This document shows, piece after piece, positions 30,478-39,091 of a stretch of 64,000 nt of DNA. Each line of letters opens with the position of its first letter. Position 1 is the first letter of the stretch. A program made the position numbers and the translations under genes. Source of the DNA: Guillardia theta CCMP2712 (lineage: Eukaryota > Protista > Cryptophyta); NCBI RefSeq assembly GCF_000315625.1, contig NW_005434591.1:59895-123894 (forward strand), read 5' to 3'. The notes under the pieces are model-generated. The model searched no databases. It was not told where the DNA came from and saw nothing but the letters and a program-made list of their open reading frames with translations.

Positions 30478-32760
30478 CCACCATCATCATCATCATCATC
30501 ATCATCATTCATCATTCATTGCTATCATCAATTTCATCATCATCGTCATCATCATCATCATCATCATCACCACCACCATCATCATCATCATGATCATCAT
30601 CATGGTCGTCATCATCGCCACCGCCAGGGGTCGTCATGATGATCATCAGCATCATCATCATGAGAATCGCCACCATCATCATGGTCATCGTCTCTGGTCT
30701 CCTCCTGCGTCACGTGGGCCCACGCCTCGAAGAACTGTTGCGAACACAGGGGAGTGAGGAGGGGTGCNNNNNNNNNNNNNNNNNNNNNNNNNNNNNNNNN
30801 NNNNNNNNNNNNNNNNNNNNNNNNNNNNNNNNNNNNNNNNNNNNNNNNNNNNNNNNNNNNNNNNNNNNNNNNNNNNNNNNNNNNNNNNNNNNNNNNNNNN
30901 NNNNNNNNNNNNNNNNNNNNNNNNNNNNNNNNNNNNNNNNNNNNNNNNNNNNNNNNNNNNNNNNNNNNNNNNNNNNNNNNNNNNNNNNNNNNNNNNNNNN
31001 NNNNNNNNNNNNNNNNNNNNNNNNNNNNNNNNNNNNNNNNNNNNNNNNNNNNNNNNNNNNNNNNNNNNNNNNNNNNNNNNNNNNNNNNNNNNNNNNNNNN
31101 NNNNNNNNNNNNNNNNNNNNNNNNNNNNNNNNNNNNNNNNNNNNNNNNNNNNNNNNNNNNNNNNNNNNNNNNNNNNNNNNNNNNNNNNNNNNNNNNNNNN
31201 NNNNNNNNNNNNNNNNNNNNNNNNNNNNNNNNNNNNNNNNNNNNNNNNNNNNNNNNNNNNNNNNNNNNNNNNNNNNNNNNNNNNNNNNNNNNNNNNNNNN
31301 NNNNNNNNNNNNNNNNNNNNNNNNNNNNNNNNNNNNNNNNNNNNNNNNNNNNNNNNNNNNNNNNNNNNNNNNNNNNNNNNNNNNNNNNNNNTCCCCCCCT
31401 CCTCCTTCCTTCCTCCCCTCCCCTCCTCTCTTCTTCCCCTCCCCTCCTCCCTTTCTTCCCCTCCCCGCCTTTCTTCTCCACCCCTCCTCCCCTCCTGTCG
31501 TCCCACCTGCAACTTGCACACATCGTTGGAACGAGACAAGACAGATTTCACAAGCTGGTCCGAGCCCGCCGCTCGCTCCCTTAGCAGCAGCCGCAGCTGG
31601 TCGTAGATGTACAGCAGGTAGTGCGTATCCATCCTGGCATACTTGAGCATCTCAGGTGTCAGGGGCCGGACCCTCCAGTCAGCCAGCTGGTACTGCTTGT
31701 CAGCCTCCTCCTCGCAGAAACGGTGCAGCAGGTAAGCAAGGCCGTAGGAAGGGAACTCAAGGACTCGGCTTGCCTGCCCTGTGTCGAACATGTTGACGAT
31801 ATAGAGACCAAAGTCTCGCTGCAGCCAGCGCACATCGCTGTCCGCGCCATGGAACACCTTGGTGATCTTGGGGTCTGTGAAGGCAGGCAGGAGAAGGTGG
31901 ATACAGCTTCTCAGCTCGATAGTGTCCACTATGAAGTCCTGCTCCCTGGTCGAGATCTGCATCAGGCAGGTGAACCCCTGGAACGACCTCAGGGAGTGGT
32001 GCTCGAGGTCGACTGCGAACTCCTTGCAGCCCGACAGCGTCTTGTGCATGTCAACCAGCTCCTTCTCCGTCGCCACCCAACTGAAGGGCGTCTCCGCCAT
32101 GTCCCTGGGCTTTGCCACTTCCCCTTGAGGGAGGAAGTGGTAGGGCTGGTACTCGATCCCATCGATCTCCTCCTCATACGGGTGCCTTCCGCTCGACAGT
32201 ACATGGTCACCCCTCCCGTGCACCTTGGGCCAGCTCTTGGCGCTGAAGGGAGTGTTGGAGTTGTCCACTACGTCCTCGAACTTCTGCTGAGGCTTCGGAA
32301 TCCCCAGGTCCTCGGGCCGAGTCTTGATCTTTGATGTCTGCTTGAACTTCCCTGCCTGTGCTCTCAGGGCGATCTCCTCTGCGTTCGGCGCCTTCCCGGT
32401 CAGCTCGTCGATCACGTTGTCCACCTTCTCCAGCCTGGCCTCAGCAAAGTCCACCACCCTCTCCAGCAAGTCCTCTGGCTCCCCCGGCAACCCCGCCTCT
32501 TCCTGCCTGCCCCCTCCTCCCTCTACATGCGACACAAGCTTGCTGACTACCGACAGGATCCTGCTCTCGAGCTGGCCTGTCTTCTTCTTGTTGGCTACTC
32601 GCTTCTTAAAGGCGGCGAAGGTGCTGTAGAAGGCATAGTCCGAAGAGGAGGGAAGGTTGTTGGAGGCCCGCACCGCCCCGACAACAGAGGAGCCCAACTG
32701 CTTGCAGATAGCTTCACCGTCGACAGCCGGAACTTCGTCGTCTTGCTTTTCTGCACTCAT
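27977..32760 (-). CDS. RRP6: Exosome 3'-5' exoribonuclease RRP6/EXOSC10 (spans assembly gap)
   Basis: PMC2NT-like N-terminus (AVRASNNLPSSSDYAFY), IPKPQ, HPYEEEI, DEDD-Y motifs AVDLEHHSLRSFQGFTCLMQISTR / FHGADSDVRWLQRDFG / YARMDTHYLLYIYD; HRDC exon ARAHDESTDFVLP; C-terminal FEPFDYS and GKSATF…WPQK*. Confidence 0.95.
30195..30685. repeat. Degenerate (CAT)n tract in RRP6 intron
   Basis: About 0.5 kb of CAT-based repeat next to the gap. Confidence 0.9.
30768..31391. other. Assembly gap (N run)
   Basis: Ns. Confidence 1.
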
Positions 32761-33237: not shown

Positions 33238-33854
33238 ACCTTCCTCCTCCCCCTCTGCCACTGCATCGCCATGAAGCTTCACGTGCTCCTTTCGCCTCTC
33301 CTCCTGGCCCTCATCCCCTTTCAAATGTGCGGTATGAGGGTTGTCATCCATGGGGGTAGGGGTACTTGTGTCAAATGACCAGACCTCAGACTCCTGGTAC
33401 AAAAATATGTAAATTGTAGGGTAGGGTGTGCAATGGTAGGGGTCGTACATGCCAACAAGGTCCGGGATTCCTGGTTCAGGCATTTACGAGTCGCATCATG
33501 AAGCGAAGAAGAGGAGGATGAGGGAGGAAGAGGAGGAGAGCAGGAGGGGAGGGAGAAGAGGAGGAAGAGGAGGAAGAGGAAGGGGAAGAGGAGGAAGAGG
33601 AGGAAGAGGAAGGGGGAGAGGGCAAGGGACAGGAGCTGGAGAGCAAGGAGGTTGACAACGGCGGGTTTGATCTGAGATATTGGACAAGAGCTTCTGCTGT
33701 TGAACGTGCACCGGTCACTGCAACGGGTCATACATGCGGCATTGCTAGCAGCTGTCACATCATAACTATCTCAGCAGCCAACGGGCCCTGGCAGGAAGAC
33801 ACATGCTGGAAGACGCATGCTGATAAGAGTACAAAACTCTCCCTACTGCTGGAG

Positions 33855-34373
33855 GATGCGCAAGAGCTCAGCTTGCTGCCTCCTCCTTGTGCTCTTGCTC
33901 CATTGCCTGCAGCTGCAGGCGATGGAGACGATCATGAGCAGTGAGAGGGGAAAGCTCTCGATGCTTCCTAGGAAGATAAGAAGGTTCACACACGGGAAGA
34001 TAATCTGCATGCAGGGCAAGGAGTTTATCAACGAGGTCCCTCAGAGGTCCCTCCTCGTCTCTGATCTCCTCTTGCCTCACACGCTGCTGCTTGTCAGGTG
34101 CTGGAGGGACAGGGTCACCCTGGACACGTCGATACCGCTCGACGACCTAGCAGCAGAGGAGACTTTCATCAAGTTGCTTGAGACAGCAAGGAGGTGAGGG
34201 ATGGTTCTGGCCAGCCCGTCATGGTCTGATCAAACCGTCTGTCAGGATCATGACGTATCCTCGTGCTCGCACAGACTGGTGCTTGCAAAGAGGAAGCGTT
34301 CCATGCCTCGGAGGAGAGCTTGCGCTTGTCGCGGAGTCCATCTTGCAGCAGCAGCAGTATGGACCAGGTCGAC

Positions 34374-34416
<43 letters not shown>

Positions 34417-36621
34417 GACTTCAGTTCATGTGCATTGTGGACAGAGTTCAACGACAAGGTCCAACTCTTCCTTCCGGGAGCCCTGGGCTGGGAGGTCCCG
34501 AAGTCAGGGATAATCTCCGAGTTCGACCTCTACCAGGTGCTCAGCTCATCCCTGCGGTCTGTTGCTGATAGCTTCATGCAGCAAGCAGCATGGGGTATGA
34601 TGCAGATTCAAAAGCTACATCAGTTTGAGTACCTGGAATCAGTGCAGCTCTTTGACAAGGTGGGATGGCATTGCGTTGACCGCGGTCGCTTAACCAGATT
34701 GCTGGCTTCTCAGGGAGAGATTGACGAGTACGATCTAGAAAGGTTGTTCTATGCAGACGAGGATGAAGAGACTGAGGTGCAAGGAATACAGTGTGAATAG
34801 TCTACTGATATCGAGATGCAGATGATACGAGTTTTGTTGAAAGTGAAGAACTGCTACAAGGAGGACCGTGTTGTGTTCGTGGAGATCGGAACGATCCTTG
34901 AGCCAACCCTTACCACAGCACAGAAAGCCATCGAGACGTCCTGTCTGGTGGTTGCAAGAGAAATTAGGTTCCTCATTCCTGCCGGCATGACAAGGTCGAG
35001 GATTGCTTGCTGCTTCTGTCTGCGACCAGGTTGAGATGCGTCACTTTCCGCCATGGGAAACTGGTGATGTCCGAGGCAGGTCTACAGGTTCCGAAGGGCG
35101 AAGTCAAGCTTACGCCATTTCTCTTTGACCTCGCTGATCCAACGCCCTTCACCTGTGACAACCCGTTCAAGAACCATCTCTTCTTCTGGAGGTATCTCGG
35201 AGAGACAAAACAGAGGTGAGCCGATGGCGGTGTTAGGTGGGAGGAGAGGAAAGCAGAAGGCAGGAGAAGGCAGGAGAAGCAAAGGGATGTCTAGTTGACC
35301 TGTGGGTGATGAAAACGATCAAGGAGGATGATTTAACTGTGATTCGTTACCTGGGATCGATTCTCAATGGCATGCAGGAGGGACGCCTCGCACAAGGCTC
35401 TCACGTTGGCATCGGAGACAACTTACAACATCTTCAAGAACAAACTGAGAGAAGTTGTCAATGTCTTGGTGAAGTCGAATCAGTCAGAGCAGCTGCCACC
35501 TGTGTTAGAGCACGGCAAGGAGAACAACTGGAAGAAGATTATCAACTCCTTGAGCTGGTGCTGGCCGTGGTACACGATGGACCCATGGAGTCAGATGCTG
35601 AAGAGAAACAAGATAAGACAAGGGAGCGAGAGGGACGAAGATGAAGGGGATGTTAATGCAGAGAGGAGGTTTATTCGCAATCAGAGGCTTTCTCTAATCG
35701 TCCCGGTGAGAAGCATCAATGGCTCCGGCTTTCAGTTTGTCGATCGCTTCAAGCTTGCGTTAGACAACCCCAGCCAGGTCATGCCGATCTTCACTTGACT
35801 TCAACGTCATCTTGCCTGTTGTTTGCCCTTCTTACTGCTCACAGAGACAATCGCGTTCCCTTCCTCCTCCTCTTACTCCTTCTCCTCCCTCTCCTCCTCT
35901 CCTCCTCTTCCTTCTCCCTCTCCTCTCCCTCTTCTTCCGCTCCTCCTCTTTCGCCTTGTTCTTTGCCTTTCATCGCTGCTCTGACTTTCTTGAGCTCTCA
36001 AGACTCTCAAGACTCTCAAGACTCACATCAAATTTTCAGGTCTTCGAAGGGAAGTACGCGCAAGACTTCCTGGATGCAAGAGCTCAATTAGAGTACAAGA
36101 AGATTCAAGACAAGACCGGCCAAAAGATCTTCTCCTTCCTTCGCTCCCTCGCCTCCAGACGCCGAGTTGAGGACGCCGACCTGGGCGCGATCATAGAGGC
36201 GTTTGAGAAGCACAACATGTCCTATCCCTTCCTCCTCCCCGTTACTAGAAAAGAGGCCCCGGACTACCACCAGATAGTCAAGAAGCCGATGTCTCTATCG
36301 ATGATCAAGGCAAGGTACAACAACCATGAGTACGACGGGAAGGTTGGGATGAAGAACTTCATCAAGGACTTCGAGCTTATCTTCTCCAACGCCTTCACCT
36401 ACAACCGCAAGTCTAGCCTTGTCTACAAGCTTGCGGAGGAAGTCCAGGAGTTTACTGTGGACCAGATACAGGGAGTCCTGCAATCATTGCCGGTGGTTAC
36501 GAGCACCACTGGGAAGAACGTCTCCAACTACGTGAGCCAAACTCTCATGGACGTTAGCGAGGAGGAGGTGGAAGAAGCTCGATTCTCCTCTGTCTCAGCG
36601 TCGAAGCAAGAAAACGACGAT

Positions 36622-36702
<81 letters not shown>

Positions 36703-39091
36703 TAGAACGTGCAGGAGGGTGCAGGTGGTGGTGGTAGCGGTGGCAAGGAAGCTAAAACAATTCTGATGAAGATTGAGATAGGAAAGAAAGAGAGCAGGGG
36801 ACTTGAAAGAACTTCAAAGGAGGAGGCCGAGTGAGAAAGCTGATGCCCATGAGCAGGAGATGCATGGAGGGAGAGATGAAGATCGTGACTGTCACATCCT
36901 CGATAGCGTTGCGGAAGAGAAGATCCTCGGTGAGATCGTCAGATGATCGACATGACGAGTTGTGATGAAGACTGGCAGACTGCCTTGAGCCCAGGGTGAC
37001 ACTAGGAGGATGTTTGATCGAGCATCACTCGTGAGTGAAGTTGTTGTCCTAGCACTTGCAGCATCTGACGAACCTGATGCTTCTCGCGACCTCCCGACAG
37101 GTCCAACTGGTTCCCCGAGAGATTCTTCGACCTTGTCGTGGTGCTGACGTGTGAGAACGGGTGAATGGCTCTTGATGCTTCGCATGCCGCGGGGTGAGGA
37201 GAGAGATTGTACTGACTGTCTCATCCTATGCAGGATGCTGTACAAGAGACTGAAGGCGAGGGACTACGAAGAGAAGAAGGTTTGTCGTTTCCTCTCCCCG
37301 CAGCTTCTCCATCCTGTCTCATGCTGTCCCCTGCTGTATCCTTGATGCTGCTTCAGATTACAGAGAACGTCGACTGTGAGATCATGCAGGTATGTTTTGT
37401 TCGCTCGCTCGCGAGAGTGCTGAAGTCACCGTCAAGACGGTCTTACAGGAAGCCTTGGAGAGCTACAAGCCTGACAAGATCCTGACCTTCAAGTCTGAGA
37501 CCGAGAAAGACATGGAACAGGCTCATGCTGCCGTTAGCGACTTCATCAGGAGCTGGGGGCGGCAAGATGAGACTAAGGAACGAGCTGCTCCACAAAACAA
37601 CATGGAGCTAGAGCAGCGTCCTGTGCGAAAGTCAGGCAAGCAGGTCCCTCCCTCGCCCTCCCTCCGCGGCATGAAGTCCAAGACCTCGGAGGAGAAACAG
37701 GTAGAGAGCCCCCGGATGTCGCAACCGAAGCAGAGGAGGGGAGGGGAGGACGGCGATCTCAAGGAGAACTGGAGTGCTCTAACGACTGCAGCCATCGGTG
37801 ACCCCTAACACGCCGCGACCTGCTCTGACTGACCGCGGCAATGTAGAGCACATGTTAGACATCTGGAACGATATCGGCGGAAACTCTCTAGCGTTTCCTT
37901 TTCATCACCCTGTGATATGAGACGAGACGCGGAAGGAGAAGCTGATCGCGGTGCTGCTGCAGGTCACGAAGCGACAAGCGCTGGACTACAAGGACGTGAT
38001 CCGCCGTCCTATGGCGCTCTCAAACGTCATGAAGAAGCTTGAGGGCGCACAGTACAAGGTGAGGAGGAAGAACTTTGTGTGGAGATGATTGAAATGGCGC
38101 TTTCAGTCCCTTGTTGAGTTCTTCTCGGATATGGACGTCATCTTTAGAAACGCCATGCTGTATAATAAGGTCGGCTCCACGTTTCATCAACTTTATCATC
38201 CTCCCCCCACTCTTCTCCCTCCACCTCCTCTGCCCCTACTTTGTGACCAGTTTTCTTCCCCTTCATCCTGCCGCAAGCTCTCCTTCCTTGCAATCTGCGC
38301 ATGCCCGGGCATCCAGCTACCCTTGATCACTCGCTCTACACTCCTCCTCCCATCGCATGCAATATAGCTTGCAATCGCAGCATTCCTTCTATCCTCCTTC
38401 CCTTCCCCTCCCATCCAACCTCTCCATCTCGATCCGACTGCCTCCCTTACCGTGGAACCAGGAGGATTCTGAAATCGCCATCGCGGCAAGACAACTACAA
38501 GCTATACTCCATCAGCACTGCAGGTCATCGACTCTCTTCCCTTCTCCCTCTCCGTTTTCCTCCCTGTCCCCAACTCCCTCGACCATTCGCCCTCCTCCCT
38601 GTTCCCTCCTCCCTCCTCCCTGTTCCCTCCTCCCTGTTCCCTCCTCCCTCCTCCCTGTTCCCTCCTCCCTGTTCCCCTGTTCCCTCCTCCCTCCTCCCTC
38701 CTCCCTCCTCCCTCCTCCCTCCTCCCTCCTCCCTCCTCCCTCCTCCCTCCTCACTCCTCCCTCCTCCCTCCTCCCTCCTCCCTCCTCCCTCGCCCCAGCT
38801 CACTTCTTTGCCAACAGGAGGATCCTGCCACAGACAGCGGACAAGCTCCTGGCCGAGATCACTCCAAAGTCTCCAGGTAGTCGTCGAGAGCTCTGCCCTC
38901 CCAGACACTCCTCTCCACACGCTCCTCCTCCTCTCCCTTGAGGATTGCTCCCCTGTATCCTTCAACCTCCTTCTCCTTGATCATCAATCACGATCGACTG
39001 AACTGCTCATGCAGCGGAGGACCTCGTTCCAGCTGCTGCGCTCCACGTCAAGGCCACCAAGACCCCAACTGATCCGATGCAACTCGGTTGA
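33855..39091 (+). CDS. Large spliced locus: signal-peptide-like leader, unknown N-terminal region, bromodomain, AK6/Fap7-like domain, second bromodomain (may be one gene or two)
   Basis: Bromo1 YPFLLPVTRKEAPDYHQIVKKPMSL…LIFSNAFTYN (~36180-36470); AK6 exons DCHILD, GGCLIEHH, WFPERFFDLVVVLTCEN, LYKRLKARDYEEKK, ENVDCEIMQ, LQEALESY (36856-37560); Bromo2 FPFHHP/VTKRQALDYKDVIRRPMAL…DMDVIFRNAMLYN/EDSEIAIAARQL (37847-38525). Confidence 0.8.
36625..36702. repeat. (CAG)n tract, in frame as polyQ after bromodomain 1
   Basis: CAG run followed by CAA TAG. Confidence 0.95.

Follow-up and report, generated by a model that had tools for sequence, protein, structure and literature searches.

An acknowledged gap concerns the readers and writers of histone marks that the cryptophyte nucleomorph imports from its host (Marinov & Lynch 2016, PMC4822330). 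Acetylatable histones are present in the nucleomorph, which also has a HAT and an HDAC of its own (PMC4822330) and imports host-encoded H2A (PMC5443833). A bromodomain locus of Guillardia theta CCMP2712 raises the question of whether an acetyl-lysine reader is also sent there. The locus lies in a 64,000-nt stretch of contig NW_005434591.1, which is referred to as the window. The initial annotation proposed that a signal-peptide-like leader, if spliced to the bromodomain and AK6-like exons that follow, would send a host-encoded chromatin reader and ribosome-biogenesis factor to the endosymbiont nucleus.

Transcript and Exon Structure

Contigs of three probable RNA runs (X1, X2, and X3) and the raw reads of a further RNA run (X14) were placed on positions 33630-36615. 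The contig alignment leaves out the repeats at 34367-34426 and 35854-35937, and the contigs are uninformative on transcript ends or levels. X1 and X2, which come from different studies, each provide one contig (3314 and 3427 nt) spanning the leader exon to the bromodomain exon, and X3 covers this transcript in pieces. The X1 and X2 contigs begin ~44 nt before 33630 and are collinear with the genome up to 34044. They then skip eight GT..AG intervals and a ninth (34364>34442), which spans a CTG repeat and is seen only in the table of contig pieces. Past the introns, the contigs are continuous over 36037-36615, and they extend beyond 36615 by 1082-1194 nt (X1, X2) or 1301 nt (X3). X14 adds 4 raw reads, which are uninformative on transcript start or strand.

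With the stated cut offsets applied, all nine introns have GT donors and AG acceptors. Because the contigs lack the introns and the splice ends are canonical, spliced RNA is their only source, and the guessed RNA label of the runs is immaterial. The exon structure and the expression of the gene are thus directly observed. The spliced frame is open from the ATG at 33856 to the TAG at 36703, giving 683 aa, or 696 aa from the ATG at 33817. This joined 683-aa model served only to check the frame, motifs, and hydrophobicity; database searches were run exon by exon.

The initial annotation had called for a single transcript from 33855 to at least 36470. This is borne out by the X1 and X2 contigs, which run from before 33630 past 36615 and join the leader exon in frame to the bromodomain exon. 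The features of the locus are collected in Table 1.

Table 1. Features of the bromodomain locus, in positions of the window.
Feature	Position	Strand	Basis or remark
5' untranslated leader	33586-33855, at least that long	+	RNA contigs; two tiny uORFs, in-frame TAA 33763-65
Possible 13-codon N-terminal extension	33817-33855	+	Upstream in-frame ATG, weak context (c at -3)
Leader, 22 codons, signal-peptide-like	33856-33921	+	Translation, crude rule, conservation in L011
Rest of exon 1, begins with M23	33922-34046	+	Basic, strongly conserved
Exon 2	34098-34193	+	Joint 34044>34096 (cut +2), GT..AG
Exon 3, holds VPCLGG	34246-34367	+	RNA contigs
Exon 4	34445-34536	+	Contig pieces table; preceding intron 34368-34444 with (CTG)n repeat
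Exon 5	34582-34659	+	RNA contigs
Exon 6	34714-34776	+	RNA contigs
Exon 7	34822-35029	+	RNA contigs
Exon 8	35080-35215	+	RNA contigs
Exon 9, part of ~440-aa N-terminal region	35378-35777	+	RNA contigs
Exon 10: bromodomain 1 ~36187-36441, polyQ 36625-36702, TAG 36703-36705	36040-36705	+	Pfam, RNA contigs
AK6-like exons and bromodomain 2, after the in-frame TAG	36706-38170	+	Very probably on the same RNA

The nearest upstream gene encodes an RRP6-like 3'-5' exonuclease on the minus strand (30685-32760). Its ORF starts at 32760 and is divergent from the bromodomain gene, so the bromodomain locus begins in the intergenic region that the two share. The RRP6-like gene is interrupted by an assembly gap (a run of N/X), and its N-terminus is, by eye, presumably PMC2NT-like.

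Start Codon Choice

The codons at 33856-33921 on the plus strand read MRKSSACCLLLVLLLHCLQLQA, and the next codon is a methionine (M23) at 33922. Another in-frame ATG is found 13 codons before the leader, at 33817, and the first in-frame stop met farther upstream is the TAA at 33763. The RNA follows the genome without a break across this TAA, which excludes coding exons before it and makes the leader N-terminal. It occupies the extreme N-terminus of an open frame on a real mRNA.

A purine is found at -3 in 7/7 reference G. theta start codons, namely those of three H2A genes, the nucleomorph H2A, the RRP6-like gene, the neighboring kinase, and a SANT-like/bromodomain paralogue. The ATG at 33817 has a pyrimidine (c) at this position, as do the starts of the two uORFs in the 5' leader (33734-33748, encoding MRHC, and 33803-33823, encoding MLEDAC). 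The ATG at 33856 has an A at -3, and no AUG before it in the mRNA has a purine at that position. M23 has the strongest context, with G at both -3 and +4. Under a scanning model, ribosomes would meet 33856 as the first favorable start, and M23 could serve as a second.

The M23 context favors a different account of the locus, in which the protein is a chromatin reader of the host nucleus. Its translation would start effectively at M23, or the hydrophobic N-terminus would be tolerated and inert, and the resemblance to a signal would be a by-product of CT-rich in-frame 5' sequence. Against this, the ATG at 33856 is met 66 nt before M23, in the same frame and with no stop between them. Scanning ribosomes reach it first, so the leader should be translated at least partly.

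Signal-Peptide Anatomy

The leader is made up of the n-region MRKSS (+2), the h-region ACCLLLVLLLHCL, and the c-region QLQA, which places L-Q-A at -3 to -1. This agrees with the anatomy expected of a cleavable ER-type signal, in which a positive n-region precedes an uncharged hydrophobic stretch of 7-15 residues and the residues at -3 and -1 are small or neutral. The leader was assessed by a crude von Heijne-type rule of our own, distinct from SignalP, that calls for a positive n-region, a mean Kyte-Doolittle value of 2 or more over an uncharged 10-mer, and a -3/-1 site. The N-terminus passes this rule from either ATG (33817 or 33856), and the best 10-residue window of the leader has a Kyte-Doolittle value of 3.38. 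In the window, the rule is passed by 3.4% of ATG-initiated ORFs of at least 60 aa and by 0.5-0.9% at the hydrophobicity of the leader. The likeness is well above chance for one gene, and the same rate applied genome-wide would yield hundreds of false positives. Leucine-rich ORFs are common in the repeat-rich DNA of G. theta, which is in keeping with a host-nuclear protein whose N-terminus looks like a signal by accident. That account has to contend with the rarity of such an accident, expected in only 0.5-3% of ORFs.

Leaders for the periplastid compartment (PPC) are expected to have a non-aromatic residue at +1 (PMC12136025, PMC5443833). At the predicted site after LQA, the +1 residue is M rather than F, Y, W, or L. 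In this respect the leader agrees with the import signal named in the initial annotation, an ER signal peptide with a non-Phe +1 residue. Judged by its anatomy, it is most likely a cleavable ER-type signal peptide that is cut after LQA.

Conservation in a Close Relative

A word search with the first ORF returned a protein (P0002) encoded on a 1.1-kb ENA metagenome contig, L011, which has 89% nucleotide identity to 33524-34665. In L011, the ATG and the frame are preserved, the donor and acceptor of intron 1 are intact, and the leader reads MRESAASCLLLVLLLHCLHLQA. Both uORFs are also retained in this relative; MRHC is unchanged, and the second is longer by one codon. The proximal 5' UTR is ~94% identical to L011, compared with 88-90% for the introns.

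The coding changes are unevenly distributed. The upstream 13-codon extension has 1 synonymous and 4 replacement changes and evolves like non-coding DNA. The 22-codon leader has 3 synonymous and 4 replacement changes. Each of the 4 replacements affects the n- or the c-region, and the 11-codon h-core differs only by 2 synonymous substitutions. Synonymous and replacement changes number 6 and 1 in codons 23-63, 6 and 1 in exon 2, and 5 and 0 in exon 3. Over codons 23-135, the 17 synonymous and 2 replacement changes indicate strong purifying selection, and translation certainly covers codon 23 onward.

Outside its hydrophobic core, the leader is fast-evolving, as is typical of signal peptides; with 7 changes, its pattern is indistinguishable from that of a neutral in-frame 5' region. 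The clear coding constraint from about codon 23, set against the ratios in the leader and its upstream extension, agrees with a host-nuclear protein that starts at M23. The h-core argues the other way, since it is unchanged in L011 apart from synonymous substitutions. With 17 versus 2 changes in codons 23-135, the sequence that follows the leader resembles a mature domain under constraint rather than a disposable transit peptide.

Farther downstream, exon 4, intron 4, and exon 5 (34445-34659) are 100% identical to L011, with flanks at 88-96%. L011 may combine sequence from several strains; alternatively, the stretch could be under unusual constraint.

Domains, Relatives, and Paralogues

Bromodomain 1 is encoded by exon 10 and matches PF00439 at 86.9 bits against a cut-off of 21.7 (E=9e-25). 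Its best sequence matches in the PDB are polybromo-1 (summed over six repeats) and Rsc4 (E 1e-18), and it contains a PDY[YH] motif. The ~440 aa encoded upstream of the bromodomain match no Pfam family in any exon. A SAM_NCD1 match upstream of the bromodomain was set aside as sub-threshold (E=0.18) and located in an ORF read through introns.

The N-terminal region appears to be confined to a narrow lineage. Exon 9 is single-copy in the G. theta genome, and a phmmer search with it against 1.84 billion representatives gave 1 match, P0001, which is an N-terminally incomplete transcript fragment from Hanusia phi. With P0001 as the query, a word search recovered no sequence other than P0001. A JGI metagenome scan with the exon 9 alignment recovered no relative, and nothing usable came from a feature search of the ESM Atlas with P0001. 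The AlphaFold2 model of exon 9, built on a 2-sequence alignment, has a pLDDT of 39 and is unusable. A word search with the bromodomain ORF found one 506-aa protein at 45% identity and, in the length range covered, no annotated model of the locus.

The genome contains 34 bromodomain matches, grouped into ~22 loci. The nearest G. theta paralogue of bromodomain 1 (44% identity) is in a 422-aa SANT-like/bromodomain ORF that has no leader, a further point in favor of the host nucleus as destination.

AK6-Like Exons behind an In-Frame Stop

The frame of bromodomain 1 ends at a TAG directly after the polyglutamine tract, where the (CAG)n run ends CAA TAG. The same frame reopens at once past the TAG and reads GGGGSGGKE, which resembles a degenerate Walker-A. 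There is no GT within 36616-36709, and the RNA contigs are unspliced to 36615, so a canonical intron cannot remove the TAG. Small exons downstream carry NWFPERFFDLVVVL and MLYKRLKARDYEEKK, which read like AK6 motifs, and bromodomain 2 follows. AK6 was not recovered in a PDB sequence search with the 138-aa ORF at 37392-37805.

Because the contigs run more than 1 kb past 36615, this RNA very probably includes the AK6-like exons as well. For the leader and the AK6-like part to form a single protein, the TAG would have to be read through or removed by a non-canonical splice, or else be an error of the assembly. The idea in the initial annotation that bromodomain and AK6 are sent together on one leader-bearing protein is therefore unsupported in the assembly, where this TAG ends the frame before the AK6-like exons and has no GT by which it could be spliced out. 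The label of ribosome-biogenesis factor is doubtful for the AK6-like part.

A frame mismatch is also seen at 37355-37420, where the exon ITENVDCEIMQ and the frame ESAEVTVKTVLQEALESYK fit only with 26 nt removed; introns in the gene are at least 45 nt. An error of 1 nt in the assembly, or another pattern of splicing, may be the cause.

Leaders with Experimental Support

Appendix S3 of ASAFind 2.0 (PMC12136025) lists N-terminal sequences of G. theta proteins with leaders that carried GFP into the periplastid compartment when expressed in Phaeodactylum. This set (Gould et al. 2006, via PMC12136025) is made up of EF-1alpha, 14-3-3, RRM1, CyP, Ubc8, ugg-t, and hemE. In six of the seven, an S/T-rich spacer ending in LRGG is found just before the mature protein; hemE is the one without it (PMC12136025 sequences). 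Host-encoded H2A was localized to the nucleomorph by immunofluorescence (Onuma 2017, PMC5443833). Its gene was located in the genome, with a first exon (L016 430-729; G000:C4:101179-101478) that encodes a signal peptide, a basic spacer of ~30 aa, and LSLRLRGG. An LRGG box is thus present in 7/8 experimentally supported G. theta periplastid/nucleomorph leaders (6/7 GFP-tested leaders plus H2A).

The bromodomain protein departs from this pattern. RGG and LRG occur nowhere in the entire 683-aa model, and the sole GG is in VPCLGG (aa 115-121). VPCLGG was not adopted as a degenerate LRGG box, as it has no Arg and the preceding 100 aa are under purifying selection. In the 25 aa after the signal, S and T account for 5/25 residues, and codons 23-135 are strongly conserved, unlike the S/T-rich, low-complexity, poorly conserved spacer of a transit peptide. 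The net charge of these 25 aa is +4, which, like the M at +1, speaks for import. The ASAFind-2 PPC score of the 20 aa after LQA, computed by hand from the published matrix on the assumption that it is normalized by column maxima, is 0.28 against a cut-off of 0.49. At this cut-off, the PPC recall of ASAFind 2.0 is only 25% (PMC12136025), so a score below it is weak evidence. With no LRGG box and no fast-evolving spacer, the leader is not of the canonical G. theta periplastid type.

LRGG after a signal peptide is also found in some Thalassiosira PPC proteins (...ifdLRGGakk and ...vlsLRGGvvh; PMC12136025 Appendix S3), and the box may not be limited to cryptophytes.

Approximately 10 kb upstream of 19 bromodomain loci was scanned in the G. 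theta genome, and starts with a signal peptide plus [LI]RGG were found on the gene strand at 3 of them. The first (L031 6364-8157; G000:C11:911263-913056) starts with a signal peptide and a spacer ending TRIRGG and is followed by the ORF QFVILPPFQRMGHG; 3.5 kb farther along this strand there is a bromodomain (C11:914771). By eye, the ORF that follows the leader reads as what we take to be a HAT1-type acetyltransferase. With its canonical leader, it is a candidate for a histone acetyltransferase targeted to the periplastid compartment or nucleomorph. The second (L035 5225-5914; G000:C88) lies ~4.7 kb upstream of a bromodomain match and reads MKIASPLILLQLAIEG...VLALRGGG, on the gene strand. The third (L020 2652; G000:C10) is a signal-peptide-plus-LRGG start upstream of a bromodomain locus, also on the gene strand. 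Since canonical leaders seem to be present on other chromatin genes, their absence from the bromodomain gene is more telling.

Destination of the Protein

Import into the periplastid compartment or nucleomorph is the leading reading of the sequence, held tentatively and at somewhat less than an even chance. In this reading, one spliced and expressed nuclear mRNA of G. theta would give a leader-bearing protein of 683 aa whose true N-terminus is the 22-residue leader, followed by the ~440-aa lineage-specific region, a polybromo/RSC4-type bromodomain, and polyglutamine. The signal peptide, cut after LQA, would direct co-translational entry into the ER lumen around the complex plastid. From there, a protein of chromatin type would pass to the periplastid compartment and the nucleomorph. 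Use of the ATG at 33856, cleavage, ER entry, and each step past the ER are what we infer. Bromodomains are not known to function in the secretory lumen. Once the ER is entered, the periplastid compartment and its nucleomorph would be the only sensible destination.

The prior for nucleomorph targeting of a bromodomain protein is low, perhaps about one in ten. A genuine-looking N-terminal signal is estimated to raise it strongly, and the missing LRGG and the conserved post-signal region lower it roughly 5-fold. The host-encoded chromatin reader that the initial annotation sent to the endosymbiont nucleus thus survives in part. A signal-like leader does lie on the same mRNA as the bromodomain; the lack of LRGG, the conserved stretch after the signal, and the PPC score below the cut-off all weigh against the destination.

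A reader of the host nucleus is the principal alternative, unlikely as matters stand, and the absence of an LRGG box and of a transit-peptide-like spacer counts in its favor. The early in-frame ATG, the rarity of chance signals, and the unchanged h-core count against it.

A working signal peptide might also lead nowhere beyond the ER. The protein would then enter the lumen of the ER or chloroplast ER or the secretory route, or it would be held by an N-terminal anchor with the bromodomain on the cytosolic or nucleoplasmic face of the nuclear envelope. This would explain why signal-peptide anatomy is present and PPC-specific features are not. The C-terminal flank of the core is more positive than the n-region, and the n-region of the relative, MRES, has a net charge of 0; both would favor an N-out/C-in orientation. 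With only 13-15 residues, H and Q among them, the uncharged core has neither the length nor the apolar character that a stable transmembrane helix requires, and the anchor was downgraded on this ground. On the Hessa scale, the 19-mer would come roughly to +2.6 kcal/mol. A bromodomain at work in the secretory lumen is not known, and this outcome as a whole is improbable.

Dual targeting from the single-copy gene would give a signal-bearing endosymbiont form from 33856 and a leaderless host-nuclear form made by leaky scanning to M23. It fits the two in-frame AUGs with a purine at -3, which are separated by 22 codons and lie precisely on either side of the predicted cleavage site. It also fits the single-copy N-terminal domain and the dual targeting of aminoacyl-tRNA synthetases reported in diatoms and cryptophytes (PMC4494062). 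These two putative forms are very unlikely; every objection to periplastid import (no LRGG, conserved post-signal region, low PPC score) applies to them equally.

The fullest version of the import reading is possible but doubtful. It holds that a polybromo/RSC4-like acetyl-lysine reader enters the periplastid compartment and nucleomorph by a leader without LRGG. Two forms of this reader, one starting at AUG 33856 and the other at AUG 33922, may be produced, in which case a single-copy gene would serve both nuclei. In the nucleomorph, the reader could partner the nucleomorph-encoded SWI/SNF-type ATPase and GCN5. If the protein does reach the nucleomorph, it would be an imported acetyl-lysine reader, and an LRGG-ended leader would not be required for periplastid import. 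If it does not, the locus is a warning that a signal-peptide-like N-terminus alone over-predicts periplastid proteins in a genome rich in leucine codons.

Comparison with Known Systems

Polybromo-1 and yeast Rsc4, tandem-bromodomain subunits of the PBAF and RSC remodellers, are the closest known counterparts of bromodomain 1, and as in those proteins a second bromodomain lies downstream. They are leaderless nuclear proteins, whereas the G. theta protein opens with a signal-like segment and contains a 440-aa region seen only in Guillardia and Hanusia. A further difference is the AK6-like stretch between the G. theta bromodomains, which lies behind the TAG.

The GFP-validated leaders of G. theta share with the bromodomain protein a signal peptide of comparable n/h/c anatomy, followed by a presequence without F, Y, W, or L at +1. 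In style, the leader matches validated signal peptides such as MPRLILLLVVLGICSA and MKAASMRLKNLLLLLSLPLVLS. The likeness ends after the signal, where six of the seven validated leaders have an S/T-rich spacer ending in [LMP]-x-LRGG and the bromodomain leader does not.

The nucleomorph H2A is likewise a chromatin protein encoded in the host nucleus. Its ER-type signal peptide, MRGLRIFLGTLLLLQLFVSSTSA, is of the same style and is followed by a non-aromatic +1 residue. In H2A, the basic spacer brings LSLRLRGG directly before the histone fold; in the bromodomain protein, the corresponding region is conserved and has no LRGG. The location of H2A in the nucleomorph has been seen by immunofluorescence.
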